From contig NW_002060970.1 in assembly GCF_000150275.1 (NCBI RefSeq), positions 146,197 to 210,196 on the forward strand: a stretch of DNA of 64,000 bases, written 5' to 3'. The notes below the pieces were generated by a model that was not told where the DNA came from, searched no databases, and saw only the letters and a list, made by a program, of their open reading frames with translations. The first letter of the stretch is position 1; each line of letters starts with the position of its first letter. The DNA comes from Trichoplax adhaerens (Eukaryota > Animalia > Placozoa). Positions 2,394-58,140 of the stretch are shown here, piece after piece. The translations under genes were made by a program, and so were the position numbers.

Positions 2394-5300
2394 TCAAGAT
2401 GATAATTTGACATAGAAAGGGCCTTTGCTCCTAGAAGCGGATGTATTAGGATCTTTCATATTCTAGCAGAGAACAAATTAGCATAGGTATCTCAAAATCG
2501 AAGTTATTTGCCCATAATTAATTTGTATTGTATTACTATACTATTATAAATATCTTTCCTCTATTTTTCCAATTATGTTTTAGAAAGATATTCAAAGTTA
2601 CAGTCTTGACAAAAAGATTTTATCACTAAAGCTTACATCGGAGTTTGCTCGGCCGGAGTTCATTTTCTGGCTAGTTACTAATATTGCCTTCCTTCTGGTT
2701 GCTACCCATGCACTTTTAACCTAAAGTAATAGATCAATTTAAAGATTGTACTAAAGTGTTGTTTAAGAAAGAAACTATAACTGTCACAAATCAGAAATAT
2801 AATCCATTCAATGTGCTGAAATTATTTACCAGCTATGTAATATACGCTTTCTTACCTCACGATTTAGAAGGCAGCTAAATATCAAGATGTGAAGACCCTA
2901 GAAAACATTGAAATGCTTATTTAAGATGATTTAATGCTTTTGATAGCTATGATATCGAAACCTATAAAATTATGTATACTACAGCATAATGTTTGCAAAT
3001 CTAAATATGATTTAGTCAGTATTTAAATACTATAATTCCTGGTATATCCATGAAGCGATCTATGAATGTTACTTTATATAAATTAATCGTTAAGCAGCAG
3101 AAATATAGAGTACCTGTAACGAATTGAATATGATAAACAAATAACTGTAAGCGGTAGGGTTGTATCCAATTGGAATTATCCCTAAACACCACGATAATAC
3201 AAGTATTGACCATAAAACGGCTGCAGCCTTAAATTCAGACCTAAATAACAACGTTTCCGAAATTATAAGTTAAACTTATCCGATGAATGGATTCTCATAT
3301 TAAGAATATAAATTATGACAACGTTAAACTACTCTAATAGTAATCTGATGTTGTAAAAGGTGCGGTTCTATGGAATAGAAGCGGGCTAATGCAAACAGAT
3401 TTGATTTAGAAATATCTGTATGCAAGAGCAGAAATACAAATAAAGTGGTGTAAGATATCTTTCTAATTATTTTAATTAGCCTGTTGCTATAAGTAGTCAG
3501 AATGGAGAAATACTCGTATTAGTGAATTTTCCTACAACATCGATATTCCATTAAGGTTACAATTTAAATGGTACGCAATACTGTGATAAATGAAAGCCTA
3601 AACTTAGCACCATCATCGTAAATCTATGAGCTCTAGTAATTAAAATTTTTTCAGCCAAGAGCCTCTAATAGCTATCTTATTTCGATTATCATACTTTTTA
3701 ATGGCAAGACCTAATATTTCGGACTAGTTTTGCTGATATATTAATTATTTATCAACAGCATTTTCAATTAATTACATAGGTAAAAAACTAAGGGTCAACT
3801 AGTAGAAAGCAGCAGTCTTAAATTAAAAAATAGACAAACATACTTGATTTTAATCAGTTTATCATTTTTAGTCACATTTTCCGATGTGATTGAAGCGCGT
3901 TTAATGATTAGCTTCCTTAGCACTACCAGGAAAATGATGCTATTTGCCTATAAGATGCAAATTATGTATTAATACCTTCACAATTACACAAGTTTTGAAC
4001 ATTCAGCAATTTTTAACATTTTCAAGCTAAATGATCATAAATTCATAATAAATACCAAAGTTAAGATCAATATTGGAGTAAAGAGTGCCAAAAACATGCT
4101 ACTATTGTAAGATATCCAGCACCTGAAAAATAAAAATGCCCATAAATGAATGAGATATACTTATTCAAGTATATCGCGTTTAATTAAAATGTTAAGAAAA
4201 TTAAATTGAAAAGTAGAAAATGTTAAATACTACGAAATCTATGCAGATTAAAGTAATAACCCTTCATCCAAGCCATATTGATTAATATGAGTAGCGACGG
4301 TTATTCCTACTATTAGTGTTGGTATACCTTAAATTCATGGTTGATAGAAAAGTACACTTAAGCTTATCATTTAAAGAACAGAACCTACGAAAAGTCGTTA
4401 AATATTCAAACTTGCGTTAAAGACTTACCCCATCCAATTATAAAATAAAACCTCGATTTATTACGTTGATAAATAGCTGCCGTTATCATAAAGTAGAAGT
4501 ATAAGCCTTCGACTGATATCCAAGTTAAGGAAGCCAAATAAAATAGGTGAAACAAGATGGTCGATATCTTGCACAATACCTATTTAATAAAGTTGGATTC
4601 AATTAGCTCCATTGCTTTATAAATATTGAAACTAAATCTGTTACATAAATTATCGTATATTTTGATATTATTTTCCAAAATAGAACTTTATCTTTACAAG
4701 TATTGTGTAGTATCTATACGTTTTAAAATTAATAGCTGCTTACCTGCCCTTTAGATGTACTAATTCCCAAAATTAAGGACATTTGAGCGATTAAAATGGC
4801 TACGATCAGATTCTTTTGAATCAAAGATCTTTCAGTATTTAGACTAAAGATAGATTGGAAAAAATATAACGTTAATATGAAATTTCTTCGGATTTCTATT
4901 TTACAAATGCTTATAATATCTAATCCATATGCTAATCATATTTCAAACCTTAGATATAAATAAGTGACTAAGGTCACTATGAGAATAATGATGGAGGCAC
5001 CAACAAAGACATATGCCAAGATCCGTAAAGCTTTTAATTTTCCACATGGTTCTATTATTTCAGTCTAAAAGATAGTTACTACCTTTAGAACTTATTCAAG
5101 AGCTTTTAAATCACATTCAATTCACTTACTATATACTATAGCTAAACTGTATATTATCAATTAAATACTGCGCAAAACGACTTTATAAAATAATATACCT
5201 TAATATTATGTCGCTGTAAAGCAAAATGGGTCAAATGATTGCAAGAACAAACTGTATAATTTGCGGCTCTTTCAGCCACATGACATCCTTGAGAGGACCA

Positions 5301-8300
5301 TTTACTGCCGAGAAGAAATTTAAATAAAGCATATCAAGATAATTAAACATTTCAGTATTTTTTCATTCATGCTTCCTAAAATTAAATACTCTGCAGTAAA
5401 TAGCACTATTAATCTATTCCAAGCCATGGAATTGTTAGGTTATTATTATATTGAGAACAATATTCAATATACTTCATGAAGGAGAAATCTGTAGCTATCT
5501 GATCGGTATCGCAAGTTTTAAAAAGATTAAAAATTGTAAAATGACTCTAAATCGAACCTAAGTGTTAGATTCCAAAATACGCAAGTAAAATTGGATGATT
5601 CATTCGCTGATTCATGATCAAATCGGTAGCGAAATTCTCTTTCATTTCCGTTAAATGCCGATTTAGGATAGACCGTACATGAAATAATAGCCGATAAATT
5701 TCTGCAGTGTAAAATTAACCAAAATGATAATTTAATGATTAAAAGCTTTTAAATTTGCTAACACTAGATACATAGAAGTTGGTTCAACCCTATTAATTAT
5801 CAAACCTTGTATTGGTGAAAACTTGATTTAATGTTGGCATAAGGCCGACGCTGATTACAACTTTGGAACCTAAAGCAAGCATTAAATGTGAAGCTCTCTA
5901 GTACCTTTTTCAATTTCCAACTATGATTTTAATTTAAACTTTCAGCAAAAGGATACTTCATCTCTGCTATAGTAAGAGTTATTCAAATTGTTAAGAAAAA
6001 TGTAAACATCTGTTGCTAGACTGCCTTACCTGTGCTTATTGACCTATTCGATAAATTTAAGTTGATGCTTTTGTCCGAAGTATTATTTGCGACCAGTTTT
6101 GCTCTATATCCTTCAAATGTAGAATCAGGCTGAATGGCGGAAATATGCAATTCTAATTGAATCAAGATATTTTTATAAGAGAATTAAAATTCTGAAAATG
6201 GGTAAAAATTAAAAATAAATATACTGCTATTTGAATTAACAGTAATTGCCTATTATTTCCGATTTAATCACGATTTCTTGTCCAACTCGAAGAGTTTTCG
6301 CTATTTTAGCTTGCAAATCATCTGAAGCTGTAACTGCTGTTGTAAACAGCTGATTCTTAATCGTTGGATCCTATCAAATTAGTACAATAACATTCATAGT
6401 TAATACTACCTCTACATTTAGCACTTTTTAAAATAGATAACAATTATTAAGTGAGCTATATTGATAAATTTAATAGTAAATTTTTAAATTAATTTTAATT
6501 TATTTCAACGAACCGGTATACTTGCAACTTTAAGAGAAATTTTCCCTAATTCTCGATAATAAACCTTTAGAAAGGTAATAATAAAATATGAACATTTAAT
6601 AAAACTCGCTCGACATAATAATGTCTTACTTGGTGAACTCTATGCATGTTCGTTAAATTGTGCTTACTAACGCAGTACCGGCACATGTAAATAAATTAGA
6701 CTGATTTTTTAATGCATGAGTACGAATAGAGAATCTTGAAGGCGTTTAGTAAGATTTACCTTAATTCAATCTGATGTTAGAATACTAACAGATGATACTC
6801 CAATTATTCAGTACAGTAGACAAATGAAACTATATTCTCAAAATATATTGCAATTGAAGAGTATTCCTAGCTTTTAACACCTTCATGTTTATATTAGCTT
6901 ACTTCTGTAAATTTAGTTTTGTAGGCTAAAGATGTGTTCTGAATTTGAGTTCTGGCTAAAATTTCTTCCAGATGGTTCATTTCCTGACTCAGAACAGCTG
7001 GATTATCGCTTATGGTGTTTTGTTGCAATAAGATGATTCCCGTTTGAACAGAAATTGTGTTCTAAAGTGTATAATGGAAAGAATAGCTCTATTAAGAAAT
7101 GTATTTTTCCTTCCCTCAAAAAAGTTAATGTTATGACTTCGATTTTAGTAAATGTATCTGTACTATAGAGAGTTCTGGATTTTCGATGACAATATTTGCA
7201 AGTTATTAAAGCTTATATTGACTAAAATAGCACAATAAAAAGTTTGTCGTTAAATATATTACTGTATCTCCCTAACCATCATTAATTCTAAATCTTTGGC
7301 TTTCTACAAGGGCTGGTACTAACGAGAAAGCATACAATTAGAAACTCGTTACTTGACTTACATTTCCTGTCAAGATAGCTGAGGGAATACTTGTTCCTGT
7401 TAAGATTGTAAGTGATCATTTAAAATCAGTAGATCTTAATCTACTCTACGTTGGGCGTAGGATATTAGATTAATAGTTACTAAAAATAGAAGTTGTAAGT
7501 AACCTTACCGTTTACGATCGAAAAAGTCACTGGCTTGCTGGGGGTACACGCTAAAAATCGATTTATAAGGTTAGAATGTGATCGTGACATTAAAGCAAAG
7601 TTGGACTTTGCTATATTATATATCGTATATGCCATAAATACTACAGCTAATAGTGATATTTCGGTTTATTTTCGTAACTTAGATGTTGCATGATACTATT
7701 TCAGTCTATACCTCCAATATTAAAAGTCATAGAGCTATTGTCGGGATTATCGAGCCGGAAACCCCAGATTGATTTTTGACCAAAATTACCCTTGAAACGA
7801 TCTATTCGGAGCATGGTAGTTGATCGTGCGTATGGAATTTCGTAAAAGTAAGGCGCTACTCCAAAAGAATAGCCACAAGCTGGTCTCCTAATACTAACTT
7901 TATACCATAGCATACCGCCAATTTTATACAGGAAAAATCCAAATAGATTAACTCCATTGGATATAAGAATTAGCTGAAATGTGTTCGTCTACATAAGTAA
8001 AGAAATGATTTTAAATTGGATTTACAGTTTTAAAATGGTAGAATATCGCCATTGATAGTCCTGATAGATATTGATTATTGCCTTCGTACCGTTCTCAGAT
8101 TAACGTAATAATTATAGGGCGCTGGTAGCAAGTCTTGCCATGTAATGATAACCACCTGGCTAACGTTAAAGCTATCAACAGTCCTGTTAAACAATCCATA
8201 ATTTGTTGAACTAGGATTAGCACGCATATAATCTTGTAAAGCAGCAACATCGTTGGCAGCTCTTTTAAATATTCCTTTAGCTAATGCTGATTGATCTTTA

Positions 8301-10616
8301 AGAGTATATTCGTGCATAAGGATGCCAGATGTCTTATATCCTCGAGCATCAGCATCAGAATAAAACGGAGCTATTATGGGGATATTTTTAGGAGAAGGAA
8401 AGGTTAACGGATAAGGATTTTCATATTTCTTGCCAAAGCTGACATATCCATTGACCGATATCTAAGATCATTGATGTAAAATGAAAATCGATAAATAATC
8501 ACTCGAAAACACTCAATCTAGAGTTAGTACGATTTCATTACACCGAAAAATTGAAACCTACGTAGAGATTTTTATAACATGACCCTTCGATTGGGATTTC
8601 ATCCTTTAATGGTAAGCTTACAACATCATCTCTTCCGCTACCGTGTACGGTCTCCTCGTAAATAATAGTATAGAAATCTACAAACCATAAGAAAGTAAGG
8701 ATAGGTTAAGGCTTTAATCAATCCTCGAATCGATGTCGATGTGACTATTTTGAAGCGTTGTTCATTCTAACCTTCGCAGTAAGTACCATTGCCGTGGTAG
8801 CCTTCCCTACACTGGCATCGAAATGAACCAGGTACGTTTGTACAGCTAGCATCTGCTGAGCAAGAACTGGTAATTTTGCATTCATCAATATCTATTATAA
8901 GAAGATTTAGAAAGAAAATATTATGTCGGACTTATGCAACTTGGAGATACTAGTCTATAGACATGGAAAGAATTTGCCACTCATTCCAATTATTCGAAAT
9001 ATTTAACCGATTTAAGATGGCACAAACCGGTATCGCAGTTTTTTCCAGTCCATCCAGGATTGCAATTACATGAATATTCCTCTTTAGTCTTATTACATTT
9101 ACCGTGTATACACGGATTAGGCAAGCAAATATTATTTTCTATAAATTGAATTAATATTTTGAATTCGTTCCGTTCTCAATTATTTTAGCATCATTTAATA
9201 AATAATAATTTCAATATTCGATCATGACTAAGGCAGGATTTTATGCAGTAATGAAATTTATTTGAAAACTACCTTCACAAGTACAATTAGAATTATTTGG
9301 TATTGGAACACAAGAACTACCAGTACATGCGTTGCTTAAGCACTCGTCGATATCTACAGAAATTAAAAAAAATTGATAAGTGATTCAGCAATTTCTAACT
9401 ATCCATTAAATAGTCATACACACAAAATATCTAAGTAGAGAAAATACTTTTCAAACCTCCATTTGTAAAATAAGATGAATTAGTTAACGAGTTATCTAAT
9501 CGAAAGGCCCAAGTCGATTTTAGGCCAAAGTTTCCATTATAGCGATCAATCCTTAACATTGTGGTCGATCGAGAATAGCTGATTTCATGATAGTAAGGTG
9601 TAACACCAAAGGAGTAACCGCTAGTAGGACGTTGAATACTCACTCTATACCATAACATTTTACCAATATCGAAGTGAAATATTGAGAATAAATTAACACC
9701 ATTGGAAATTAATATCAGTTGAAAGGTATTGGTCTAAAGTGGCAGAAAAGTTTGAGGATGTTTTAGTTAAAATTCTTTAATTAAGGGCAAAGCTGCATTA
9801 TACCTATACTAATATAATACTAATTGTAGCATGGCGGAACTTGAATATTAGTATTACTATCGCATTATGCTTATTCAAGTAAATCTAATTGCATCAAGTT
9901 TGCATTCGGTGTTTAAAGTAATTGTTTCTTTTAATAGCTTAAAATAGAACATTTACCGTATTAGCTGCAACATAATAGGTATAAGGAGAAGGTAATAAAC
10001 CATGCCAAGTAATGACTATAACATGGTTTGCTTGAAATCGATTGACGATATTATTGAATACACCATACGTGTTGCTGCTTGGATTATTTTTGACATACGT
10101 TTGAAAGTGAGCTATATCGTTGGTTGCCCTTTGTAAGACTTTATTTGTTTGTGTAGAATTTTCCAGTAAGAGATACTCTTGCATGTAAATTCCGGAGGAC
10201 TTATAACCACGAGCATCCGCGTCAGCAAAGAATGGAGCTATGATCGGAATATCTTTCGGTGAAGGAAATACTGACGGATAGATGGTTTTATACTTTTTTC
10301 CCAGGCAAACATAGCCATTGACAGAGACCTAAATTTTAGCAGTAAAATTTTTTTAGAACATAAACAATAGATATCCAAGACGGAAATTGTTTACTATGGA
10401 CCTATCTACAGGAACATCTTCATTATTTTCTAATACTTATGATGAATTTATATAAAATAGCAATAATTATTGAAATGTTGCATCTTACATATAACTGTTT
10501 AAAGCATGAATTGATGAAATTGATATTCTTCTTTAAAGGAAAGGCAGCAAGTTCATCATCTGCATTTCCAAAAAAAGCATCTCCAGCTTGTAAGCCATAG
10601 GGATAAGGTGTAAAAG
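2394..10616 (-). CDS. Adhesion GPCR gene 1, multi-exon: NIDO-EGF-EGF-cbEGF-NIDO-GAIN/GPS-7TM; signal-peptide exon not located
   Basis: Exons splice in frame. NIDO exons ([40 protein letters not shown]). EGF exons (DIDEC...). GAIN exon 5558-5701 ([10 protein letters not shown]...CVFWN). GPS exon 5199-5304 (KWSSQGC...CSCNHL|THFAL). TM1 4949-5064, TM2 4744-4843, TM3 4429-4579 ([11 protein letters not shown]...IGWG), TM4 4261-4327, CW+TM5 4056-4122, TM6-7 3114-3240 (...FNSLQ), 2856-2897 ([14 protein letters not shown]). Tail exons end at TGA ~2394; the terminal exon is less certain. Confidence 0.9.
7712..8677 (-). other. NIDO domain 2 of gene 1 (3 exons: 8562-8677, 8090-8461, 7712-7988)
   Basis: [10 protein letters not shown]...[13 protein letters not shown] and [12 protein letters not shown]...WGFRLDN. 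Two exons have the same lengths as in NIDO1 (372 and 277 nt). Confidence 0.85.
8772..9353 (-). other. Three EGF-like exons of gene 1 (9273-9353 truncated with 5 Cys; 9028-9138; 8772-8891 calcium-binding EGF)
   Basis: Translations [63 protein letters not shown] and [40 protein letters not shown]. All three are phase 1-1 exons. Confidence 0.9.
9457..10616 (-). other. NIDO domain 1 of gene 1 (3 exons: 10489-10616, 9957-10328, 9457-9733)
   Basis: Motifs [20 protein letters not shown]...FPSP...[31 protein letters not shown]...GNFG...WAFRLD match the nidogen/tectorin/MUC4-type NIDO pattern. Confidence 0.85.
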
Positions 10617-11369
10617 CTATCATTTTTAATACCAAGATAGTATTGAAAAGCATTATTACGTACCGTACCACATCAGAAATAGAATTAATTATTTTTAGAA
10701 TATCCTCCTATTAGATTATGGCACATCATGTAAATGGTTCTCAAACCGAATTGCAATTAAATTCACCAACTATATTATAGTAATATGCAGGATTACCTAT
10801 TAGTAAAATCTTATGCAGTCATTAAATGTTGGTAAAAGTGAAGCAAACAGCTGATCAGTACTAAAACTTTTAGCACTATGGAATGAAAGGTATGCTTTGA
10901 TCCCTTAATTTAATGCATACGATTCAAAGGGTTAATTTTGATTGTAATTTATTGTTTTCATTTGTCAACTGACGATATGCCAATCGATGAATCATGCTAT
11001 TTACAAAGCCCATTATAAAAATCGCCTTTATACGAGAAACTCATAGTCTGAAGTCAATATTATTTAATTATCGACATTACTTCATCACACAGGAAGAGAT
11101 TCTACTGGCAGCTTTTCGTAATAATTAGAAACGTATTTCCTTCGATCTTTTATGCAATATCTACGTCCTATTCATAGTATTTGTGACGAATTAGTAGATT
11201 TGCTTCCTACACATTTTTAAGGATTCGGAAATTTCTAACCACTTGCAGAAAATTTTAATTTATATTTTAGAAATGATCGAGCACAGTCTACCCTATCGGT
11301 TGACTATTTGCAACTGCTAATTTTAAGCTTCATAACTGTTCATGTACACCAGCTCACGGATTTCCAATA

Positions 11370-13775: not shown

Positions 13776-14326
13776 TGCTACGGTGTTGCCTTGTCATTAG
13801 GATAGTTTAATAAGTACAGTAGGAGCAAGTATGAAGAATATCCATATTTGTAGTGCTAGCTAAGATAAGTAATGCCTTAACGTGGATGTGGTTTGTAAAA
13901 TTTCATACATAATTGATATTGATTGTTATTGTGTGATAGATAGCAGTAAGATGATTCAAGTTCTAGTTGATGATAACTGAATTAGACAACCTACGAGCTT
14001 AGATTAAGATTAAGTATGAGTAAGAGATTCAAAATATTTACTGATAGAAAAGCTATGTAACGAATATCTCAGTTTGAGATGTTTCTTCTAGTAAGGTATA
14101 ATAATAATACTGTTGTTGTTTGCAAATTAGACGGTTCCTATATAAACGGGAACATTTGAGTTGAGTGGTATAGTAAAAAGTTGTAGATGTATCTTTGCTA
14201 ATAAAAGTTTTATCTTTACAGTATTTTGCTGTGTGTGTTAAACGTTAAGTAAAAGGAAGTTTAAGTCAGCAGCAACTTATAGACTTTTACTGTACGTTAC
14301 CTAGTCGCAGAAGTGAAATTGTGACA
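13776..14326 (+). mobile_element. Solo-LTR-like element, family A, 551 bp
   Basis: TG...CA termini, perfect 5-bp TSD GCTAA, TATATAAA (~14139) then AATAAA (~14200). Near-identical inverted copy at 17147-19514. Confidence 0.85.
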
Positions 14327-15318: not shown

Positions 15319-15770
15319 TGTTACAAAACAGCATTGCAATAAGATAACGTAATCCACAATCAATCAGTCGATTCCCTGAACTACGTATCAGGGAGCAGTA
15401 TCTACTCTTTCAGGAACACTTTTCTTATACTAGTAGACTACAAAAAGACTTAGACGCCTCGTATCTTACGTTAAACACTAATCATAAGAGCCAACTTTAT
15501 TACACTATTTATCGCATTTATATACTCCTTTACAATAGCAAAGACATCCTAGTTAGTAATATTAACGTTGAAACCTGATAATGAATCAAAAGCAAATTTT
15601 ATCTACTGCTACCTAATGAAGCCAACAGTATTTACGAACATAGCCATCAAATGACTAGTACAAAATTATCAGCTTACAATATATTCTAAATTAGAAACTC
15701 TTCATATAAGGGTAAATCAACAAAATTATCCCAACGTAGATAATTCTACTGTAATCTCGATATTACCGTG
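15319..15770 (-). mobile_element. Diverged or truncated solo-LTR-like element related to family B
   Basis: Starts tgttacaaaacagcattgcaataagataacg... and aligns by eye with 43869 onward, including cttagacgcctcgtatcttacgttaaacactaa. The far terminus and TSD are not clear. Confidence 0.65.
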
Positions 15771-17870: not shown

Positions 17871-17910
17871 TACACATACTTAATCTTAATCTAAGCTCGT
17901 AGGTTGTCTA

Positions 17911-24300: not shown

Positions 24301-27300
24301 TAAAATTTTTATGAACGAAAAATCGTTCAGTATTAAGCCTGAAAGCGTGCCATAAGCGAATAATTAGCGGTAGAAAAATGATTCATAAATATGCAAGTCC
24401 ATACGTTATACCTTTCCTATAAGACTGTAAATTGCATTTTCAGTTATCTGAATTAAAAGTAATATTACTTCCTCATGTACCTTAAAAATGTATAACAAAA
24501 AATTGTGATTGCCATGGATATAATGGAGAATCCAATTCCAATGTATGTTATGAACTGTAAAATCTCCAGGTCCCGATCAAATTTTGTTAAATTCACCTTC
24601 AAAAGAATCAAGAAATTCAATACATATAGGAATGTGGTACTAAAGTTTAGACTGATAGAGATGACGTTCATAACGTATAAAGAGAAACTGTAGGCAAATT
24701 TGCAAATGTAAGATATAAATCAGACATTAAACATAAAATTTCTAAATACCTCTGTTATTTGCAACATAATGGCAAAATGTGTTAAGTGATTACAGGAACA
24801 AACGGTATAAGTCTCAGATTGATTCACGATCAAACAGCCATTTTTCGACCATTTCCTATTTGCATTTCAAAAAAAACAATATTTAAACCGATTTGAGCAT
24901 TTCTATACACAGATTTGGTATCAACCAGCAAATTCTGAAGCCATTGCATTAACATTTAAGCACGCTAAAGTAATCAATGTGTACGTATTTATTAGTATTT
25001 ACCAAAAATGCAATCATAAGGTTAATACAATAGGGAAAAATAAAACTAGATCGAAAGTAAATCGCTCCTTTGCAAAGCATTCGGGTGACTACAGTAAATA
25101 CTGTTTTAATAGAATACCTAAGCGTAGTATTCCAAAATACGCAAGTGGTTTTAAGCTTTTTGCCTTTAGGTTCATAATCATAACGATAAATGAAAGGTCT
25201 TTTGTATCCGTGAAAAGCCGATTTGGGATAGACGGTGCAAGATACGATAGAAGACAAGTTGGTTCTTGAATCACTAAAGAAAAATAGTTATGTATCTTAT
25301 TAGGCGTAATTAGGTATTTAATTACTACAATAAACACCATATCAAGTAACCTATACGTTTTTTTTATTCTTATTTATTGTGTTACAGTATAATTACTTGA
25401 AATATCCAAATATTTCATTAGGAGCTTTTAGAACGCCAACACTGACACTGACAATTGCACCTAAAAATTACGATCACATACTTTAAGCTTAGCAATAACG
25501 CCTCATTTTTGTTGATCTAAAACTATCGCTTTCGCATTACCAATACTTTAGGCGTAATAAGAATTGAAAGCAACTAATTTACATCTATCCTAAAAGTTTC
25601 CATTGCTACTAATTATATTGAATATTCCTATTAATTATCATTACCTGGATCAAGTGATTCTCTAGAAATATAAACTGATACCGAACGTTCACTACCCTGA
25701 TTAATTGGAAAAGATGCATAATAGTCGTCTACAGTATGGTTGGTATTGTTGACATCGCCAACTACGTAAGCTGTTGCAATCAAAATAGTTAAGGAATTAC
25801 CATAAGATTACACTCTTGGACGCTAGCGAAAAACACTTGTAATTAAGCGTTATCTTGAGATATTATATGGTACATGATAATGTAGCTTCAAATCCTTACC
25901 AGTTTTGCTGTTAGTAACATTAATTTTATCTCCATTATTTAATGTAGGCGATAACTTGTCACCTAATTTATCCATGGAGACAACAGATTGAGTCGCCAGT
26001 GCTCCATGAGTGTGACCATTCTGCAATGATTTATTGTTGCATTATTATTTTTGAAAGCAATTTGTCATAATAGCGATATTTCGCTCTCCTCTATTTCCGT
26101 AAAGCTGTTATTACTGTATCAAGCTCCAACATACCGAATGGCCGGCGGCATAAGCGGATACTTTGTCAAATCGGTCAATGTAAGCCTGTCATTAGAGAAA
26201 GGCGTTAATAATTAAGATAATTTACAGGACCATTGCGGTCATACTTTTCATTAATAATAATGGCTGCAATCGTTGAGGAAAATGCATTTATTTTTATAAC
26301 TGAAACGATTAAAAATTGGCGACCATTCTAGCTATTGGACGAAAATCTGCAATTGTTATTCATACTGACTTCATAGCAAAACAACAGTAAATTTTGCAGT
26401 AAAGATAAGACGTAGTAAGCGGTCAGTAGTTTGAGCAACATTGATACTTACTGAGGCAAATTGAGTTTTATCACGATGACTGGCATTCTTTAAGATGGCT
26501 TCCACAACGAGCGATTGCATTTGATAATATTGTATCATAGGATCTGAATAACCTTGTGCAGAATTACCTAAAGCCAGTGGTATATGTAATATTGTGGTCA
26601 CATTCTGTACTGGTTTAGTATTGGGAACCTAGCGATTGATATTTCATGTCGAGTTAGTTTATAGACCGGTATATCAGGTCAAATTGTTTCTAATGCACAA
26701 GAGTACATAAATGTCAATAGCAAACCGGGTTTTGGAAAGGTACTTTCGTCGTTGCTGAACCTGTAGCACTACTTGTACTTGCTGCTGCTATATCAGAAGA
26801 AATGGAATGATTGCGATTTAAATAAGCATGACTTGCGATTTCCTATCGATATTTTTACACTATCATTATGACACAGTCTACAATAGGTACTGCGGGTAGC
26901 CTTCAAATCATTTTATGAGGTATGCAGTACACTGTCGCTACCGAAGAGCTTAACATATCATTTATGCTGACGTTGCAATACAACTTTATGCGCATATAAA
27001 CCGATCAACTTCCAAATGGAAATTCTAATCAAGTTTTAGTTGATAAATGTAATTTAATCAGATGAAGAAGTTTTAATATCCGATTATAAATTTGGGTTTG
27101 GCAGATATTCGTAGAACTGGCTATCATGATGAGCTAATGTATGTTAATACACAGCTTTCATTAGTACGCATACCGCTAGTGGTGGCCATTGGAGTAGTCA
27201 CTGGCGCGTTAGTGGAGGGGATACTTGTGCTTGATGGTGCAGTATTGGAGCTAGTTACAGTAGTCATGGCTGTAGATGGCGTTGTCGATGGTGCTGTAGT

Positions 27301-30300
27301 TGGCAAAGTAGTAACTTTAGTAGTCGATTTACTGGTTACTTCGCTCGTTGTTCCAGCCAAAACTGTAGTTGTTGCCTTAGTGGTTAAATCGGTTGTTGCT
27401 TTGTTGGTGGTTGGCACAGTTATGGTAGGAGATGTTGAATCTGTAGTAGCGGCTGTTGTTGATCTTGTAGAGGGCTGTGTCGTTTTTGGAGTAGAGACTT
27501 GAGATAGGCTTGCATTTTGAGTAACCTCAGTAGTAATAACACTTTCACTTGCAGTGGTTGTTTCCATGGCAGCCAGTGAGGTGGCTTCAGAAGTCATCTC
27601 TGTAGTCGCTTCTGTTGTTCCATTGGTAGTCTCCTCCAAGGTGCTTTCCGTAGTTGTTTCTGCTGTTAAATCTGTAGTATTTCCATCAGTTGTACCTGTA
27701 CTCCAATCGGTAGTTGCTTGCATAGCAAAATTGCTGCCTGTGGTAACTTCATTACCGTCGTCTGTAGCAGCTTGGCTAGTAGCCGCTATGGCTGCCACAG
27801 TGTTCTCAATTCCTGTGCTTGTTTCTGTAAATGCTTCTGTTGTTGCATTTGACGATGCTCTAGTTACGTCAGCCGTTACTCCAGTCGTTGCTTCAGTCGT
27901 TGATGGTGTCGTCGCTTCCGTAGTTGCTTCACTTGTTGATTCGGAGGTCGCTTCCGCAGTTACTTTAGTCGTCGCTTCGGCAGTGACCACGGCAGAGGTA
28001 GTTTCAGTAGCTGCTTCAGTCACGACCTCAGTTGCCTCGCTAGTACCGTTAGTGGTTGTTTCAGTCGTTGCTTCAGTCGTCGCTTCAGTCGTCGCTTCAG
28101 TCGTCGCTTCAGTCGTCGCTTCAGTCGTTGCTTCAGTGGTTGTTTCAGAGGTTGCTTCAGTCGTTGCTTCAGTCGTTGCTTCAGTCGTGGCTTCAGTCGT
28201 CGCTTCAGTCGTTGCTTCGGTCGTTGCTTCAGTCGTTGCTTCAGTCGTTGCTTCAGTCGTTGCTTCAGTCGTTGCTTCAGTCGTTGCTTCAGTCGTTGCT
28301 TCAGTCGTTGCTTCAGTCGTTGCTTCAGTCGTTGCTTCAGTCGTTGCTTCAGTCGTTGCTTCAGTCGTTGCTTCAGTCGTTACTTCAGTTGTTGCTTCAG
28401 TTGTCGCTTCAGTGCTCGCTTCAGTCGTTGCTTCAGTGCTCGATTCAGTCGTTGCTTCAGTTGTTGCTTCAGTCGTTGCTTCAGTCGTTGCTTCCGTGGT
28501 TACTTCCGTTGTTGCTTCAGTCGTCGCTTCAGTTGTCGCTTCAGTTGTCGCTTCCGTCGTTGCTTCCGTCGTTGCTTCCGTCGTTGCTTCAGTTGTTGCT
28601 TCAGTTGTTGCTTCGGTCGTCGCCTCAGTTGTCGCTTCAGTCGTTGCTTCAGTCGTTGCTTCAGTCGTCGCTTCAGTTGTTGCTTCAGTTGTTGCTACAG
28701 TTGTTGCTATTGTAGTCGCTTCAGTCGTTGGAACAGTGGCGTCTTGTCACAAGTACGTAATAAAATGTGTATCAGCGATATACAGTATAAAATGAAATAA
28801 AATGAATTCTAGTGTACTTATTTTACGATGTAATATGAATTAAGAGAGAGAATCGTTATCCAACTGAATATTGCAATTTTCTACTGCTCTAATGGAGCCG
28901 TTTAATGCATCGATTTNNNNNNNNNNNNNNNNNNNNNNNNNNNNNNNNNNNNNNNNNNNNNNNNNNTTTTGAGTACCTCAGTAGTAATAACACTTTCACT
29001 TGCAGTGGTTGTTTCCATGGCAGCCAGTGAGGTGGCTTCAGAAGTCATCTCTGTAGTCGCTTCTGTTGTTCCATTGGTAGTCTCCTCCAAGGTGCTTTCC
29101 GTAGTTGTTTCTGCCGTTAAATCTGTAGTATTTCCATCAGTTGTACCTGTACTCCAATCGGTAGTTGCTTGCATAGCAAAATTGCTGCCTGTGGTAACTT
29201 CATTACCGTCGTCTGTAGCAGCTTGGCTAGTAGCCGCTATGGCTGCCACAGTGTTCTCAATTTCTGTGCTTGTTTCGGTAAATGCTTCTGTTGTTGCGTT
29301 TGACGATGCTCTAGTTACGTCAGCCGTTACTCCAGTCGTTGCTTCAGTCGTTGATGGTGTCGTCGCTTCCGTAGTTGCTTCACTTGTTGATTCGGAGGTC
29401 GCTTCCGCAGTTACTTTAGTTGTCGCTTCGGCAGTGACCTCGGCAGAGGTAGTTTCAGTAGCTGCTTCAGTCACGACCTCAGTTGCCTCGCTAGTACCGT
29501 TAGTGGTTGTTTCAGTCGTTGCTTCAGCCGTCGCTTCAGTCGTCGCTTCAGTCGTCGCTTCAGTGGTTGTTTCAGTGGTTGTTTCAGTGGTTATTTCAGA
29601 GGTTGCTTCAGTCGTTGCTTCAGTCGTTGCTTCAGTCGTCGCTTCAGTCGTTGCTTCGGTCGTTGCTTCAGTCGTTGCTTCAGTCGTCGCTTCAGTCGTC
29701 GCTTCAGTCGTCGCTTCAGTCGTCGCTTCAGTTGTCGCTTCAGTCGTTGCTTCAGTCGTTGCTTCAGTCGTTGCTTCAGTCGTTGCTTCAGTCGTTGCTT
29801 CAGTCGTTGCTTCAGTTGTTGCTTCAGTCGTTGCTTCAGTCGTTGCTTCAGTCGTCGCTTCAGTTGTTGCTTCAGTTGTTGCTACAGTTGTTGCTATTGT
29901 AGTCGCTTCAGTCGTCGCTTCAGTCGTCGCTTCAGTCGTCGCTTCAGTTGTTGCTTCAGTTGTTGCTACAGTTGTTGCTATTGTAGTCGCTTCAGTCGTT
30001 GGAACAGTGGCGTCTTGTCACAAGTACGTAATAAAATGTGTATCAGCGATATACAGTATAAAATGAAATAAAATGAATTCTAGTGTACTTATTTTACGAT
30101 GTAATATGAATTAAGAGAGAGAATCGTTATCCAACTGAATATTGCAATTTTCTACTGCTCTAATGGAGCCGTTTAATGCATCGATTATAACTTACTGTAT
30201 TCGCATATATACCGAATCGAAAAACCTTCACATTGGGCTTCATTCCATTTCCAATCGCTACTGACATAAGTATAGTGGGCACATTGAAAAAATGCGCTCA

Positions 30301-30801
30301 TTCTAGTAGAGAACTGCCAGTCACTAAATCCATAATCAGCTATTGATTTTAAAGTCTGAATCCAGATGCGATCAGCATCGTTTTCAAAGCCTGGGAGACC
30401 GTTAGTATGGAAACTTCCTAACCAGTATTTATCTACACTATTTGTCAGCAGATTGGCTTTGATAAAATTATTTTTGGCTACGCTATCTACGTAGACTAGT
30501 TTAGAGCCAGTTCGAAGGCTTTCACATTCAGTAATAGCCTCGGAGTATTTTTTTAAAAGCGATCCAACTTTTAAGCAACTACTGCCATAATTCTGCCATC
30601 CCGAATCGCATTGACCTGTAATAAAATGGTTGATAACAGTAATGGAACAGTATCAAAATGAATGCAATAGGAAGATGAGCCTAGAACAGAGTACTAGAAT
30701 GGACGGAAACGATCTTGCATACGAGAATTAATGTATAATGAGTACCCTACGATCATAATCACATATGTATTGGATATTATTCCAAGTATTGCACTTTTCA
30801 T
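21369..30801 (-). CDS. Adhesion GPCR gene 2, multi-exon: putative signal peptide, C-type lectin domain, (TTEA)n mucin stalk, GAIN/GPS, 7TM
   Basis: Putative first exon 30723-30801 (MKSAILGIISNTYVIMIVGYS...). CTL exon 30196-30615. Mucin exon(s) 27174-28742 / 28967-30013. GAIN exon 25118-25264 (SSIVSCTVYP...CVFWN). GPS exon 24750-24855 (KWSKNGC...CSCNHL|THFAIML). 7TM exons: LNTERFFVHKN, LASFTWMFVEGLHLY...IGWG, CWLSY...WSFLGP, KATAILLPILGLTW...FNSFQ, GLFILLFHCLLNSE. The stop position (~21369) is tentative. Confidence 0.9.
28052..28730 (-). repeat. 12-bp coding tandem repeat (ACGACTGAAGCA-like, encoding TTEA), ~55 units, copy A
   Basis: Directly visible (tgcttcagtcgt)n. In frame with the minus-strand T/E/A-rich mucin exon. 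Confidence 0.95.
28917..28966. other. Assembly gap (50 N) between two near-identical copies of the mucin exon plus adjacent intron (~27514-28915 and 28967-30186)
   Basis: A run of N; the sequence on both sides is duplicated with a few SNPs. Confidence 0.97.
29503..30001 (-). repeat. 12-bp coding tandem repeat (TTEA), ~40 units, copy B
   Basis: Same unit as copy A. The flanking anchors show it is 180 bp (15 units) shorter. Confidence 0.95.
30196..30615 (-). other. C-type lectin-like domain exon of gene 2 (missed by the ORF track)
   Basis: QCDSGWQNYGSSCLK...YSEAITECESLRTGSKLVYVDSVAKNNFI...YWLG...IWIQT...DW...CAHY...WKWNEAQCEG..RYICEY. A single phase 1-1 exon. Confidence 0.9.
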
Positions 30802-46194: not shown

Positions 46195-46631
46195 TGTCAC
46201 GGTACGAACTACCGTGAAGAAATAGATATCTAAATTTGGTTAATATAATATAGTGATACTATATTACAACTAGTTACTTACAATAGGAATTACTCTAATT
46301 ATAAATGTGTTTCAGTAAATTTAATGCTGTGCTGTAATGTGCACTGAAATGATTCTGTGAATGGACATATTGTAGTCCGACTGTGAAAAATTAGTTAGGT
46401 AGATGTTCTCACCTAAGTATTTTTATAAGATAACTCGTGAATGTTAGCTGCTGTAGAAAGGTATATAAGCCCGTCAGATAGTTGAATAAAGTAGTTCTCA
46501 ATTGTCTAGTTGAGTTTAACGTAGAATCAAAGGCGTCTAAATTCTTGTGAGTAGGGATACTAAATCCCGGAGACTATAGTAATTTAGAGATTTGTTTAAC
46601 GTTATCCTTGTCACGAAGCTGGTTTGTGACG
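46195..46631 (+). mobile_element. Solo-LTR-like element, family C
   Basis: TGTCAC...GTGACG (CA mutated to CG) with perfect TSD TCGAC. TATATAA ~46462 and AATAAA ~46485. Confidence 0.85.
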
Positions 46632-53000: not shown

Positions 53001-56000
53001 TTAATAGATCACCTACCTGATATTTCGTTACATTCATGGCCAACATCAACGTACCTTGAGCCAAAAGAAGTGCAACCAACAAGTTTTTGTGTACCACAAA
53101 CCTTTCAGAATTCAATCTTAAGATACGCAAGAATAGTTTGAATAACCGTTTAATGACCAGCATAGCAATATAAATTATTGATTGTGCATACCTTAATAAG
53201 GTATAAACGGCTAATGTTAAAAAGATGAAAAATATAGAGCATCCCATCCCAATGACAGTAATAAGATCCAAATTTTCTAGATAAGTTCGTGTGTTGTTAT
53301 AATCTTTTGTGCTTTGCTATTGGCAAAATAAAAGATTAAAAGAGCTCTTTCTTAAAGCCTATAAATATTTAATGAATAATCTAGGCTTACTTTTATTGGT
53401 TGAACCATTAGGGCAAAATGGGTTAAATGATTGCATTGACAGACTGTATAAGTTCTGCTTCTGGCTACCGCGACACAGCCGCGCTGGGACCAGGCACTGT
53501 AAAAATGGAATTAAGTTAAACACACATAAAGTTTTAATTCCTCTACTTTGATACAATATTAAAAGGCTACAAGAAAATAGTTTAACGGTTTAAAAATAAG
53601 TAATCTACAATTATTAGGGTTTTAAAAACTCGTTTACGGTATTTAAGACTAGATAAAAATTCATTCATTCATTACGATTGATCGTATCGTAGTGCCATAC
53701 CGAGATGGAATTTCAAATTTAATGGTATAAATATAAATATACTACTTGTGAAGTAAATAGTTAGGATCCATAATTTCTCTCGTACGTACTGCGATTTTGT
53801 ATCCCAAAATACACAGACAACTTCTTGAAGAGATGATTCAATCTAAAACATTAAAGCCGATTTTTGGTGTTAGAATGCATGATATTTCTTGGCTCCTATA
53901 ATATGACCTTAAATATCAGATTAAACATAGCACTGCTGTAAGTTAAAATATGATATTTATATGTGACATTTCATGTTTACGAATAGCTCGATCTTGTCTA
54001 CATCTTGAATACCCACAGAAACATATTCTTATAACTGGGATAGTGAAAACGACTTAATATAAACATATACAATATTTTATGATTGCGATTAGCTCGATTA
54101 TTTCTACCCGTACAAAAATACTCTCATGACTAGGTTACTGGAAATAACATAATTTTAGTCAATATTTTATGCTTATGATTAACTGGATCCTTTTTAAATT
54201 TCTAGTCCCTAATTGATCATTATCCAAAGTATAGTAGATACGGAAAAAAAGGGGTCATGCAATCTATAATTTAAATATAATAAATGCTTAATGTTCTGAC
54301 TGTTCACTGCTTGCTTCACTACTCTGACAAGGAATTTTCTAGAATAGCAATCATATATTTCTTCTATTTCTAAATATTTAATAACCCTATTTATGAAATA
54401 GTAATAGAGTAAGAAATTAGCTCACCGCTTTATGGCTTAAATTATAAACAAAGTTTTGATCGGCTTCAAATCTTGGTGTCGGATTTATTGTACATAATAG
54501 AATCGCTGATAGAATTTCTTTAGAGCTGCAAAAAAAATATTTAGCTGCAATTATCTACAATGCTCCCGAAGCAATTTCAACTAAAAAAAATCAACAAAAC
54601 GTCCAGGAAAGCTTATACCCGTTGACGGTTACATTTCCAAAGTAACTTTCAAATCGTAGTATTCCAGAAACAATTACTAACTTTTCATTGACTATAATGG
54701 GAATATTTATAATTTAGGAAGTTTGTCTGAATATTTTTTGGCCAATATCATACTTGAGCAGAAAGCATGAAACAGTTACCGTCAAAAGAATTGGCTAGTT
54801 TGGGTATATTAAGCGAAGCTGCCACATTTAGTGACGTCGAAATTATGCTTTTAGTAAACTGATGATTATTGTGATATCGTGCAGGTTCGACAATAACTTC
54901 CATATCTGAAAAAGATCGCAAAATGAGTAAAGAGCTTTTACAATTATCCTTTTCAGATTAATAAAGCTAAAAGCTAAATGATTTTTGATATAGAAATCGA
55001 TGGTATAGTAGATAATTTCTTCATCAATACTTAATCATAAAGTGTCTTACCAATATCTGTCTCTTGGATGAATAACGATTGGCTTATATTGCATGCTTGA
55101 GTCAATGCTAACCCTAACGCATCTATATTACTTGCTGATTGTGAAATTACAGCCATTTGCTCACTCTGCAAAAAACAATGATAAGCGTTATTTTATCGCC
55201 AATCTGTCTTTTCTACTGGATGGATAATCTCTCAATATCTTGATATAAGCTCTTGATACTAACCCTTTCTTTATCGGTGAATAATTTTGGGCTGTTTTAA
55301 TCATCTGAAAATAATTCTAATGAAGATTGCGAGAAAAATAATTTTATAGCTCATGGTATCTAAGAATATGTTTTACTTATAGCGCATGTTGGACATTACT
55401 TTTATTTTTTAGTTGAACTAAATTTCAAAAATCTTACTTTTATTAGTCGAGTTTGACCAGTATTCTGACCACATATTAATTCGGTTTTTGTAATCATAGC
55501 GCTTACTAAATCTAATGCATTCACCAAAGCTTGACAAGAAATGTTGTTATTGACCTGGACAGATCTCTGAAAAGATATCAGCACTTCGTTGCCGTAGCTA
55601 GAATTAACGGTTTGATTACTTTCCTTTAGCTACCATATAATGAGAAGAAATGAAGAAATCGAGAAAATTTTATCCAATATGAAAAATTCTTGTAAGAATA
55701 GGAAACAATATTTCTAGATAGTTTGATCATTTTCAGCACAAATACCTGATATAAAGCAGTTTCGAACAGAACAAAACTTATGTTTTTCTTACTTCCAGAT
55801 ATAGTTGCGGGAAATAAAGTAGATTCATCTATCAATAAGTGAGTGGCATTATACATTAAACAATATTTTTTATACTTATTTAAATTAATGCTGCGACTCT
55901 TCTACAGATTAAATGATCGCATTTTAAAATGCTAAGCTCTACGGCTTAGTTGTCTTGATCTGTTCTTTAGCGGTATAACAGCTAACAGCAATTTGCGAAA

Positions 56001-58140
56001 TCAAGATGCTTTGCAAGATCAAAATTAATCTTATAAGCATGAATAGAATACAACGTGCATCAAGTTTCTAGAAAGATTTATACTCTAAAATTTAACGGAT
56101 TGATAAAGCGATTTATAATGTACGTAAAAGAATACATTTGTGATGCTTGTACAACTGCAATTCATCAAATTCTTGCCTGAGCCTAATACGTTGGCATGTT
56201 TAAAGGCCATGATAGACTTATGTAAGAATAACAGCATTGATCAACTTACTCTTTTGTGGACTTTCTGAATAATTTAAATTTGGAGAAGTCGCTTTCTCCG
56301 TAGTTATTGAATTGGCTGTGCTGTCTATTGCCGGTCTCACTGTTGCTGTCGTTTGGTCAACATAGCTGGTTGCTGCATCAGTAATCGGAATAATTCCAGT
56401 TGAGCATTTCTGAGAATCAGAGCAATCACTAACTGTGGCTATTTCTGTCCTTTTTGAAGGTGTTATGCTATTAGAATCAGTTCGAAAGATGGTCTGGACT
56501 GTTGGTACAGATGTTATTTTAGCTGTCATTTCTTCCGTTATTACAGATGAATTAAAGCTATCAGTAGTTTCTTCTATTTTGATCGCTGTAGTAGAATTAG
56601 CCAATTCACTACTTACGGCTGTAGCATTATTCTCATCTTTAAAATCTGCAGGAATCTCGGTAGGATCAATTATAGTAGTTGCATTATCAACTTCTTCATC
56701 CGTAGGGAAATCAATGGTGATCGTTGCTTCATTGCTATAGTTGGAGTTACTCCATTGCTCAGTGGTAAAGTTATCAGAAACTTGTGGATTGTCTGTAGAG
56801 TCGATCTGAGTAATATTTGTTTCTGTAGTGGTTGATAAAGATGTCGTTGTCTCAGTTTCGTTACTATTCAAGGGATCTATAGTCCCAATAACACCGTTTG
56901 TCGATTGATCGCCACTTCCACTTATAGATTCCGAAAAATTGAATGCTGCTCCTGTTGCTGTTAAGGTTGTGTTTACTGTTGTATTTGTTACTACTTCTAT
57001 ATCTTCTGTTGCCGTTTCTGTCACTTGTGCAGTCGTTTCCGTTGTTATTTCTGTTGAAGTTTCGATTAAAGCTTGTGTTGTAGTTTCATTCACTGCTGTT
57101 ATATTTTTATTTGTTGCTTCTGACACAGTTTCAGTAGTTGCTTCTGTCGTAGGTTTGCTAGTTGCTACTGGTGTAATTTCACTGGCAATTTCTGTTGTGG
57201 CTGCTGTAGTGGCATCAGTGATAGTTAAGGCATAAGCTATTGGAATAAGTAACAAGAACAATTAAAAATAGATCAGAAATGCAATATAGTCTTTGCAGTA
57301 GTTACAAAATAGCATTGATTATAAGACTTTAGCCATCGCAACAAATCCATTGGGCAACAGTTATCAAACACTACGCTTAAGAAGATAATTTAAGTAATTG
57401 ATAAAGTTTCAAAAGCTCAATTAAGCAACAAACATCAATTTAATTTTCTAATCAAATGAATACTACTGGGCCAAGTAAAGTACTAATACTAACAGGATAT
57501 TCTACTCGTGATATTTCATGTACATGGACAGCAATAATGCTATAAATTTTTACAAATGTGCATTATTATATGCTGCTATTTTGTCGCCCATCTAAACCAA
57601 ACACGATACTCCGATACTGTTCTTCGTGATTCTTTAGGTAAATTACATCACAAGAATTAAATTGATGTCAATTTCAACATCGTTTATTGGCAAAGATTGC
57701 CATCGAGAATGCCTTACCGATATCACAAATAAACGGATATTTTACTGCACAATCTATATCGCGCCATCTCCAAGTAGCACCCGAAGTTCGGCGGTAGGAA
57801 ACGCATTTTCTTGACTTCCAATATGGCGCACCGTAATACCAATTATCATAGCCATAATAAGCGATACTTTTGCCTGTTTGGATCCAAATGTGGCTAGAAT
57901 CTGTGTCAGCACCCGTCATGTCTTTCAAGCCAATGTAAATAAAATCGCTGGTTTGTCCAGTCAAGAAAGTAGTTTTGATAAAATTGGAAACAGATGCACT
58001 ATCAACATAAGTCAACTGAGCGCCTGGATATAGGTTTTTACACGCAGTATTGGCATTATCAAAGGTTTCATAGGAGCTTGTAGCATTTACTAATTTAAAA
58101 CAACGATCTTCATGGGATTTCCAGCCGGTTGGACAACAAT
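50019..58140 (-). CDS. Adhesion GPCR gene 3, multi-exon: C-type lectin domain, S/T-rich stalk, GAIN/GPS, 7TM; signal-peptide exon not located
   Basis: CTL exon 57718-58140. Stalk exon 56250-57236. GAIN exons ~53789-55625 (LSAILLCTINP; VVCVFWD). GPS exon 53391-53496 (WSQRGC...CQCNHL|THFALMV). 7TM: LNSERFVVHKN, LAAFSWMMVEGIHLY...LGWG, CWLSYNHGMIWSFITP, KATAILFPILGVTW...LNSLQ, GVFIFIFHCVLNSE. Tail ends ...HVPCL* at ~50019 (tentative). Confidence 0.9.
56250..57236 (-). other. Mucin-like Ser/Thr-rich stalk exon of gene 3
   Basis: ORF-track 56218-57261 trimmed to AG/GT boundaries. Rich in T/S/E with many N-x-S/T sequons. Confidence 0.85.
57718..58140 (-). other. C-type lectin-like domain exon of gene 3
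   Basis: CCPTGWKSHEDRCFK...TFDNANTACK...AQLTYVDS...YIGLKD...IWIQT...NW...KCVSY...WRWRDIDCAVKYPFICD. Confidence 0.92.

Follow-up and report, generated by a model that had tools for sequence, protein, structure and literature searches.

The adhesion group of G-protein-coupled receptors (GPCRs) is thought to diversify through the shuffling of ectodomain modules onto a constant core made of a GAIN domain and a seven-transmembrane (7TM) region, and we know of few clear cases in which a single genome reveals the recipient clade, the ancestral head and a donor-type gene together. In the placozoan Trichoplax sp. H2, 28 of the 36 receptors with a C-type lectin-like domain (CTLD) are Secretin/Adhesion GPCRs, and the list of their locus tags shows consecutive runs (PMC6321704). 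The combination of CTLD and GPCR was stated to be unique apart from one amphioxus receptor (PMC6321704); contrary to this 2019 statement, public models with Lectin_C, GPS and 7tm_2 are now found in hemichordates, echinoderms, molluscs and cnidarians. Here, we describe a stretch of 64,000 nucleotides (nt) of Trichoplax adhaerens DNA, hereafter the window (contig NW_002060970.1, that is G000:C1387:146197-210196 in a 105.6-Mb assembly of 1414 contigs), which carries three adhesion GPCR genes on its minus strand (genes 1, 2 and 3, at approximately 2394-10653, 22144-30801 and 50022-58243). We propose, with a probability of roughly 80%, that they are three members of a placozoan-specific, tandemly duplicated adhesion GPCR family and that the lectin head of gene 1 has been replaced by a MUC4-like cassette. 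The array would thereby offer a readable case of head exchange in one of the simplest animals.

The three genes share a common chassis. Homologous exons were located by translated comparison, their junctions were derived from frame-keeping GT-AG sites, and an exon-chaining predictor was then trained on those junctions; all modelled exons are open and all introns are GT-AG. The GPS exon measures 106 nt in each gene, and the exons of transmembrane helices TM2 (100 nt), TM3 (151 nt), TM4 (67 nt) and TM5 (67 nt), the TM6-7 exon (127 nt) and the TM7 exon (42 nt) are also identical in size, so that from GPS to TM7 only the TM1 exon (116, 116 and 125 nt in genes 1, 2 and 3) and the loop-3 exon (104, 104 and 101 nt) vary. 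The intron phases, from the intron before the GPS exon onward, run 2,0,2,0,1,2,0,2,0 in all three genes; phases rest on exon models throughout, except for gene 3, whose junctions are supported by the annotated Trichoplax sp. H2 protein RDD37702.1. Pfam searches, run on single exons, matched GPS (E 1e-12 to 9e-12, with the cleavage motif CNHL followed by THFA) and 7tm_2 in each gene, and a family profile spans TM1 to TM7 exon by exon. Exon sizes, phases and Pfam matches thus bear out a first-pass annotation of the window, which had described three same-strand genes with homologous GPS and 7TM exons and matching intron phases. The 17-residue GAIN exon that it had seen in genes 1 and 2 is present in both (51 nt, phase 0-0, at 6564-6514 and 26185-26135). 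A 40-residue GAIN exon, claimed for the same two genes, exists in gene 2 (121 nt) and not in gene 1, where the canonical acceptor yields 100 nt (33 codons) and no AG is available for a 121-nt start. The last GAIN exon, described as near-identical in genes 1 and 2, does share a ten-residue motif and the sequence CVFWN without a difference, but is only 54.5% identical as a whole. This common exon also prompted us to ask whether genes 1 and 2 had recently undergone gene conversion, which was ruled out: DNA identity is 69% there and the introns are unalignable. Between the paralogues, DNA can be aligned only within conserved exons (67-77%), and the duplicates must be old because their introns no longer align.

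The shared chassis is not a property of the three genes alone. Genome-wide, a profile of the TM3 exon detected 53 loci. The scaffold of the window carries nine of these (C1387, at approximately 38, 63, 89, 114, 151, 170, 199, 219 and 250 kb), among them the further paralogues that the first-pass annotation had proposed to look for in the flanking sequence; no extra 7TM exons were found between genes 1, 2 and 3. The break points of the 7TM exons are the same in 30 of the 30 loci examined across the genome. Because of this, the exon pattern is a family trait rather than a special local chassis, and the matching 7TM phases do not mark out a trio as first thought. Trees were built from profile-anchored GPS-7TM exons, aligned exon by exon against profiles and concatenated (FastTree, and IQ-TREE with 19 taxa), with outgroups taken from a representative protein library searched with the TM3-exon profile (the window encodes none of its 150 best matches). 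The nine C1387 loci and one locus on C1382 form a ten-locus clade (Shimodaira-Hasegawa-like (SH-like) support 1.0, ultrafast bootstrap (UFBoot) 83), so that the three 7TM regions of the window fall together and not in distant adhesion GPCR clades; the 7TM region of the family is closest to that of human ADGRD1. The sister of gene 3 is L035, the next gene beyond the end of the window (SH-like 0.998, UFBoot 99), and the gene at 250 kb of C1387 is the weakly supported partner of gene 2. When genes 1, 2 and 3 are constrained to be an exclusive clade, the log-likelihood falls by 24.6 units and the approximately unbiased (AU) test rejects the tree (p=0.013). The tandem cluster of three was therefore an effect of the window, which cuts through at least nine genes, while the broader proposal of a lineage-specific, locally duplicated set of adhesion GPCRs in which the GAIN/7TM core is conserved and the heads differ is supported.

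Some features of the neighbouring loci deserve mention. L033 (G000:C1387:81700-91699) and L034 (106900-116899) are by far the closest pair, with 87% identity over GPS-7TM; the array therefore also duplicated recently. L035 (G000:C1387:216500-226499, minus strand) carries, at gene-strand positions 1226-2662, a 479-codon stalk exon with a TTEA repeat of the type seen in gene 2, although its 7TM sister is gene 3. In both gene 3 and L035 the last GAIN exon is split by an extra intron, and the ten-residue motif differs in gene 3. A short open piece on the minus strand of the window at 53850-53894, ISCILTPKIGFN, resembles the first half of the last GAIN exon (58% identical to the gene 1 motif) and sits just upstream of the CVFWD exon of gene 3 in a different frame; it may be a relic of the unsplit ancestral exon or of a partial duplication. 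Further tandem arrays occur at G000:C1401:12-119 kb (six genes) and C1411:7.04-7.14 Mb (at least three), with a same-strand lectin exon 6-10 kb upstream of each TM3 exon.

What, then, was the original head of these receptors? A search with the lectin exon of gene 3 returned 38 exons in the genome; for 29 of them, a same-strand TM3 exon follows 5-13 kb downstream. Because 25 of the 53 loci are served in this way, against approximately 0.1 expected by chance, and because a lectin exon lies upstream of every C1387 receptor except gene 1 (all nine other clade members being lectin-headed), the lectin domain is the ancestral head of the clade, together with a Thr-rich stalk of which several paralogues have an exon, and genes 2 and 3 have kept it. 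Gene 1 is built differently, as the first-pass annotation had noticed: a NIDO-EGF3-NIDO head stands where genes 2 and 3 have a C-type-lectin fold on a Thr-rich stalk. In each of its NIDO modules, two consecutive exons match positions 5-88 and 100-186 of the 186-position profile, and the internal introns are of phase 0; module 1 exits in phase 1, and module 2 is entered and left in phase 1. The EGF exons between them score 2e-7 (EGF) and 7e-11 (EGF_CA) in Pfam, the first one (9353-9273) being truncated to 5 Cys. In our models, phase-1 introns do bound the ectodomain modules, namely the three EGF exons, both NIDO modules, both lectin exons and both mucin exons.

The nearest relative of the gene 1 head is found in a MUC4/SUSD2-like gene on another scaffold (C1378), in which an Ig domain, nine phase 1-1 EGF exons, NIDO, AMOP, VWD, C8-3_MUC4, further EGFs and a single transmembrane helix follow one another. 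A NIDO exon of gene 1 is 60% identical to the exon at C1378:333870 and 57% identical to its own second copy, while the other genomic NIDO exons reach at most 46%. NIDO module 2 and the C1378 NIDO share 62.6% identity and a 372-nt middle exon; modules 1 and 2 of gene 1 share 59.7%. The correspondence extends to the whole EGF-EGF_CA-NIDO block, whose exons measure 111, 120 and 128/372/516 nt in the C1378 gene and 111, 120 and 116/372/277 nt in gene 1, in the same order and phases. At its end the last NIDO exon of gene 1 stops at a phase-1 donor, whereas its C1378 counterpart continues into AMOP. Phase 1-1 modules, and a homologous module of the same exon structure in an unrelated gene, are the signature of exon shuffling, and both appear here in the predicted exons. 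No lectin relic was found upstream of gene 1, and a literature search found no paper on a NIDO-headed GPCR. Because the other nine clade members are lectin-headed and the NIDO-AMOP-VWD context is ancient, we infer that the lectin and stalk of gene 1 were replaced by an exon block of the MUC4-like type, in which NIDO was then doubled. The suggestion that the array diversifies ligand-binding heads thus stands for one swap, that of gene 1, on exon-for-exon cassette evidence, and not for genes 2 and 3, which keep the ancestral head.

The replacement may have had consequences for the core. Gene 1 is the most divergent member of the clade and has its longest branch (36-49% identity to the others, compared with 46-66% among most other members and 87% for L033/L034); its third-loop exon escapes the family profile, which picks up the TM5 exon only when the threshold is relaxed; and its post-cleavage peptide, THFALQRH, is polar where other members are hydrophobic. 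These features would suit a decaying or non-signalling copy, i.e. a decoy or pure adhesion molecule instead of a working tethered-agonist receptor. We consider this unlikely, since the exons of gene 1 are open, its splice sites canonical and its exon sizes conserved to the base, and since the HL/T site and the GPS cysteines are kept, although such intactness speaks against a pseudogene and not against altered signalling. We thus prefer to regard gene 1 as a head-replaced receptor. It is tempting to speculate, if at somewhat less than even odds, that gene 1 is a head replacement caught in the act, with an identifiable donor lineage and with subsequent faster change in the 7TM core and the tethered-agonist peptide. 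If so, ectodomain exchange and the re-tuning of an adhesion GPCR core that follows it could be read on this scaffold as in a natural experiment.

In gene 2, the stalk is encoded next to an assembly gap. The stalk repeat is a 12-nt unit encoding TTEA, and the mucin exon that contains it is met twice, once on each side of the gap: window positions 27515-28915 (in copy A) are the same sequence as 28967-30186 (copy B), and the edges of the duplicate coincide with both gap edges. Copy A has an open frame from 28746 to 27174 (524 codons), with an acceptor predicted at 28718 by correspondence with 29989 in copy B, and holds 56.7 repeat units; copy B holds 41.7, and its frame ends four codons beyond the gap. 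Because the two copies duplicate each other, the sequence edges of the gap are not continuous. The flanks are most likely overlapping contigs of one locus, or its two alleles, left unmerged. A true tandem duplication in the genome is improbable. It would account for four substitutions, one indel and 15 repeat units of difference between the copies, which are thus not the same reads assembled twice; but duplicate ends that fall exactly at gap edges are expected of unmerged contigs or alleles and very improbable in a genuine duplication, the copied intron segment shows 100% identity across its 169 nt, as suits redundancy, and a difference of approximately 1% (98.7% identity over 386 nt of non-repetitive exon) suits the polymorphism reported in genome papers (PMC6057997). 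Under either reading of the gap, the path of gene 2 is intact, from the lectin exon to the mucin exon of copy A. No public model of the gene 2 stalk was found in a search for one. The segment 30731-30886, upstream of gene 2, was also considered as a second, decayed lectin exon, a reading that was ruled out (profile-profile probability 1.9%).

Are the heads joined to the cores? For gene 3 they are, as far as evidence-based annotation goes. RDD37702.1 (1118 residues; Lectin_C 30-145, GPS 732-770, 7tm_2 790-1026) maps exon by exon to window positions 58243-50022 through lectin, mucin, GAIN and 7TM, with DNA 99% identical, and the H2 gene set was built using RNA-seq evidence (PMC6057997). Its stalk exon in gene 3 is 24% Thr and 11% Ser without tandem repeats. 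An AlphaFold model of RDD37702.1, folded with 27 relatives, shows a lectin domain, a disordered stalk (residues 150-492, predicted local distance difference test (pLDDT) below 50), a GAIN region of five helices (492-609) and a beta sandwich (615-773) with pLDDT of approximately 60-78, and seven helices. Foldseek matched this model to inactive CD97 GAIN-7TM (E 2e-22), to the 7TM of ADGRD1 (template-modelling (TM) score 0.84-0.86, 37-38% identity) and also of ADGRL structures, and to the GAIN crystals of BAI2/BAI3 (E approximately 3e-13, TM score 0.60-0.63). The 5' end of RDD37702.1 is probably incomplete, because its MGACK N-terminus lacks a signal peptide; no better first exon for gene 3 was found within 1.5 kb. 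Hydrophobic stretches just before the lectin exons were examined as signal peptides and ruled out, being translated polypyrimidine tracts that end in the acceptor AG.

For genes 1 and 2, it is strand, collinearity, phase compatibility and analogy with the family that suggest a head joined to the core. In gene 1, the NIDO/EGF exons (7712-10653) might instead form a separate gene for a secreted protein of matrix type, the receptor then starting below 7700, headless or with another head. No transcript or public model connects these exons to the core, a stop codon lies three codons past the proposed donor at 7712, so that this exon could be terminal, and the predicted exons between 7550 and 5800 are short and low-scoring. 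Yet in-frame stops shortly past donors are expected in introns of 31% GC; the NIDO/EGF exons are collinear with the core on the same strand, at a head-to-TM3 distance (6.2 kb) typical of the family; a phase-compatible, stop-free exon chain links the two; no Met with a signal-like start is seen between 7700 and 5750; and nine of nine other clade members have an upstream head. On balance, two separate genes are improbable, and we retain the NIDO/EGF block as the head of the gene 1 receptor.

The lectin heads themselves are divergent. The head exon of gene 2 falls below the Pfam Lectin_C threshold, and is 32% identical to that of gene 3 (E 2e-25). A profile of eight paralogous lectin exons matches solved CTLDs (PLA2R at 8e-69 over five repeats, single domains at approximately 1e-19), and the AlphaFold model of the gene 2 head (pLDDT 89.3) superposes on the carbohydrate-recognition domain of Dectin-2 with a TM score of 0.81. 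It is by position only that gene 2 is placed, putatively, in the CTLD-7tm_2 family. In the alignment of the paralogous lectins six Cys are invariant and the EPN/QPD triplet is absent, only the Pro of the triplet position recurring; the WND motif is degenerate (gene 2 has WNE, gene 3 WRD). Judged from these residues, the heads are lectin-like folds that lack the canonical sugar site, and Ca2+-dependent sugar binding is not implied. Repeated, independent acquisition of lectin heads by GAIN-7TM cores, with a convergent architecture as the result, is very improbable: the lectin domains of the paralogues are only 21-48% identical, but all lectin heads are single phase 1-1 exons at the same place upstream of the stalk, and lectin similarity tracks the 7TM tree where it is readable, the lectin of gene 3 being closest to that of its 7TM sister L035 (44-48%).

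Several points weigh against our proposal of a head-replaced gene 1 in a tandem family: (i), gene 1 sits on a long branch and its placement within the clade is weak (SH-like 0.32). (ii), searches turned up neither a transcript nor a public gene model of gene 1 or gene 2, whose exons are modelled only tentatively upstream of the last GAIN ones, by prediction from splice sites and codon bias; on one paralogue, the predictor missed or misplaced approximately two of nine conserved exons. (iii), the Pfam GAIN model matched no single exon of genes 1, 2 and 3, nor the RDD37702.1 sequence, and a GAIN fold is suggested for gene 3 only, through the moderate-confidence model (pLDDT approximately 60-78). 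(iv), the candidate signal peptide of gene 1, which would follow a start Met at 10653 as a short hydrophobic leader (the stop being at 2394), is unconvincing with its 14 residues, and none was seen in gene 3 or RDD37702.1. (v), the direction of cassette transfer is read from the wider, ancient NIDO-AMOP-VWD context and is not proven.

A mechanism may be suggested for the receptors, in which we infer self-cleavage, glycosylation, ligands and signalling of genes 1, 2 and 3. Each would consist, in order, of an extracellular head, a stalk (presumably O-glycosylated), a GAIN domain and a class-B2 seven-helix core. The GAIN domain would cleave itself at HL/T and leave a tethered agonist starting with THFA; a ligand that binds to the head or a pull on it would expose the agonist and switch on G-protein signalling. 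The roles in recognising microbes, food, substrate or self that the first-pass annotation had put forward as possible go further than the sequence supports. The family grew by tandem duplication of whole genes. In gene 1, a phase-1-bounded EGF, EGF_CA and three-exon NIDO block would have taken the place of the lectin and stalk, and the NIDO module would have been duplicated inside the gene afterwards.

Table 1. Features of the three receptor genes, in window coordinates, and the Trichoplax relative of the gene 1 head.
Feature	Position	Strand	Basis
Gene 1, whole span; adhesion GPCR with NIDO-EGF-EGF-EGF_CA-NIDO head	2394..10653	-	Pfam on exons; splice chain without internal stops
Gene 1 NIDO module 1	9457..10653 (exons 10653-10489, 10328-9957, 9733-9457)	-	NIDO halves, E 7.5e-11 and 3.6e-9
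Gene 1 EGF exons, each phase 1-1	8772..9353 (9353-9273; 9138-9028, 111 nt; 8891-8772, EGF_CA, 120 nt)	-	
Gene 1 NIDO module 2	7712..8677 (exons 8677-8562, 8461-8090, 7988-7712)	-	NIDO, E 2.6e-8 and 9e-10
Gene 1 stalk/GAIN exons, tentative except the last (5701-5558, ten-residue motif...CVFWN)	5558..7550	-	Prediction
Gene 1 GPS exon, CNHL/THFALQ cleavage motif	5199..5304	-	Pfam GPS 5e-12; acceptor read directly
Gene 1 7TM exons, TM1-TM7	2856..5064	-	Pfam 7tm_2 3e-11; homologous exons and phases
Gene 2 candidate first exon (Met and hydrophobic leader, phase-1 donor)	30723..30801	-	ATG/hydrophobicity/donor scan only
Gene 2 C-type-lectin-like exon, 420 nt, phase 1-1	30196..30615	-	Paralogue similarity, profile, predicted fold
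Gene 2 copy B: intron 30018-30186 and 5' part of mucin exon, 41.7 TTEA units, cut by gap	28967..30186	-	
Assembly gap at junction of copies A and B	28917..28966		
Gene 2 copy A: intron tail 28747-28916 and complete mucin exon, 56.7 TTEA units, phase 1-1	27174..28916	-	
Gene 2 GAIN exons, tentative	25118..26567 (last exon 25273-25118)	-	Prediction; last exon by homology
Gene 2 GPS exon, CNHL/THFAIM	24855-24750	-	Pfam GPS 1e-12
Gene 2 7TM exons	24596-22467	-	Pfam 7tm_2 1e-8
Gene 2 last exon, tentative	22266-22144	-	Prediction
Gene 3 first exon of the H2 model (MGACK, phase-1 donor)	58228..58243	-	Public H2 model; 5' end doubtful
Gene 3 C-type lectin exon, 423 nt, phase 1-1	57718..58140	-	Pfam Lectin_C 1.2e-12; acceptor read directly
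Gene 3 mucin-like exon, phase 1-1	56250..57236	-	Covered by RDD37702.1 residues 142-477
Gene 3 GAIN exons	53790..55671 (55671-55429, 55316-55266, 55168-55052, three in 54905-54426, 53842-53790)	-	H2 mapping and prediction
Gene 3 GPS exon, CNHL/THFALM	53496-53391	-	Pfam GPS 9e-12
Gene 3 7TM exons	53316-51119	-	Pfam 7tm_2 2e-8
Gene 3 C-terminal exons	down to 50022	-	H2 mapping and prediction
MUC4/SUSD2-like gene, nearest relative of the gene 1 head cassette	L038-L040 = G000:C1378:328001-358000	+	

The window is AT-rich (GC content approximately 31%) and is matched by a Trichoplax sp. H2 contig at 99.0% DNA identity over 12 kb, introns included. Rfam and tRNA scans of the window gave no matches. 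Several inverted repeats with arms of 200-300 nt, 93-97% complementary and 2.8-5.3 kb apart, lie at 13776-19514 and 40557-46398, and a 75% inverted-repeat pair links 15314-15614 with 40890-41190; these long inverted repeats between the receptor genes are probably transposon remnants. The intergenic segment 18001-20000 has a strongly negative GC skew of -0.24 and many short, low-complexity open frames on the plus strand.

How does the locus compare with described systems? Genes 2 and 3 resemble the placozoan CTLD Secretin/Adhesion GPCRs, described as 'scavenger-receptor-like' (PMC6321704), in their combination of CTLD and 7tm_2. In gene 3, T. adhaerens has its own copy of RDD37702.1, an annotated H2 protein of that family, and the tandem clustering seen here mirrors the consecutive runs of the H2 locus-tag list (PMC6321704). 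The earlier study gave domain counts only (PMC6321704); to these we add the exon and phase anatomy, the TTEA stalk, the absence of sugar motifs, the scaffold tree and a head-replaced member. The picture of a three-gene cluster is thereby corrected: the genes are part of a lectin-headed family of approximately 25 members, earlier regarded as candidate pattern-recognition GPCRs, and the absence of sugar-binding motifs matters for tests of the proposed immune or scavenger role.

Human ADGRD1 (GPR133), of class B2, is similar in its HL/T GPS, in a GAIN fold (predicted for gene 3) that immediately precedes TM1 and in a tethered-agonist-like THFA(L/I)M. Its head, by contrast, is of laminin-G/pentraxin type, where the Trichoplax receptors carry either NIDO/EGF or, on a mucin stalk, a lectin-like domain, and there is no one-to-one orthology, the Trichoplax clade being placozoan-specific. 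The predicted proteins XP_006817911.1 of Saccoglossus and XP_077992799.1 of Glandiceps combine Lectin_C, GAIN/GPS and 7tm_2 like genes 2 and 3; however, the tree places such lectin-headed models, whether from hemichordates or from other invertebrates, apart from the Trichoplax clade, and some carry HYR or other extra domains. As for the MUC4/SUSD2 type, the EGF-EGF_CA-NIDO block of gene 1 is 55-69% identical to that of the Trichoplax C1378 gene (at approximately 333 kb), but gene 1 has no AMOP, VWD or single-pass transmembrane helix; a new phase-1 donor ends its NIDO and GAIN-7TM follows instead.

Genes 1 and 2 appear to be missing from public annotation. The receptor family, the tandem-array type and the mechanism of diversification are already known. 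What this locus adds to them is a receptor with a NIDO/EGF head, the donor lineage of which can still be read, along with the family's exon and phase anatomy and a stalk of variable length at an assembly gap.

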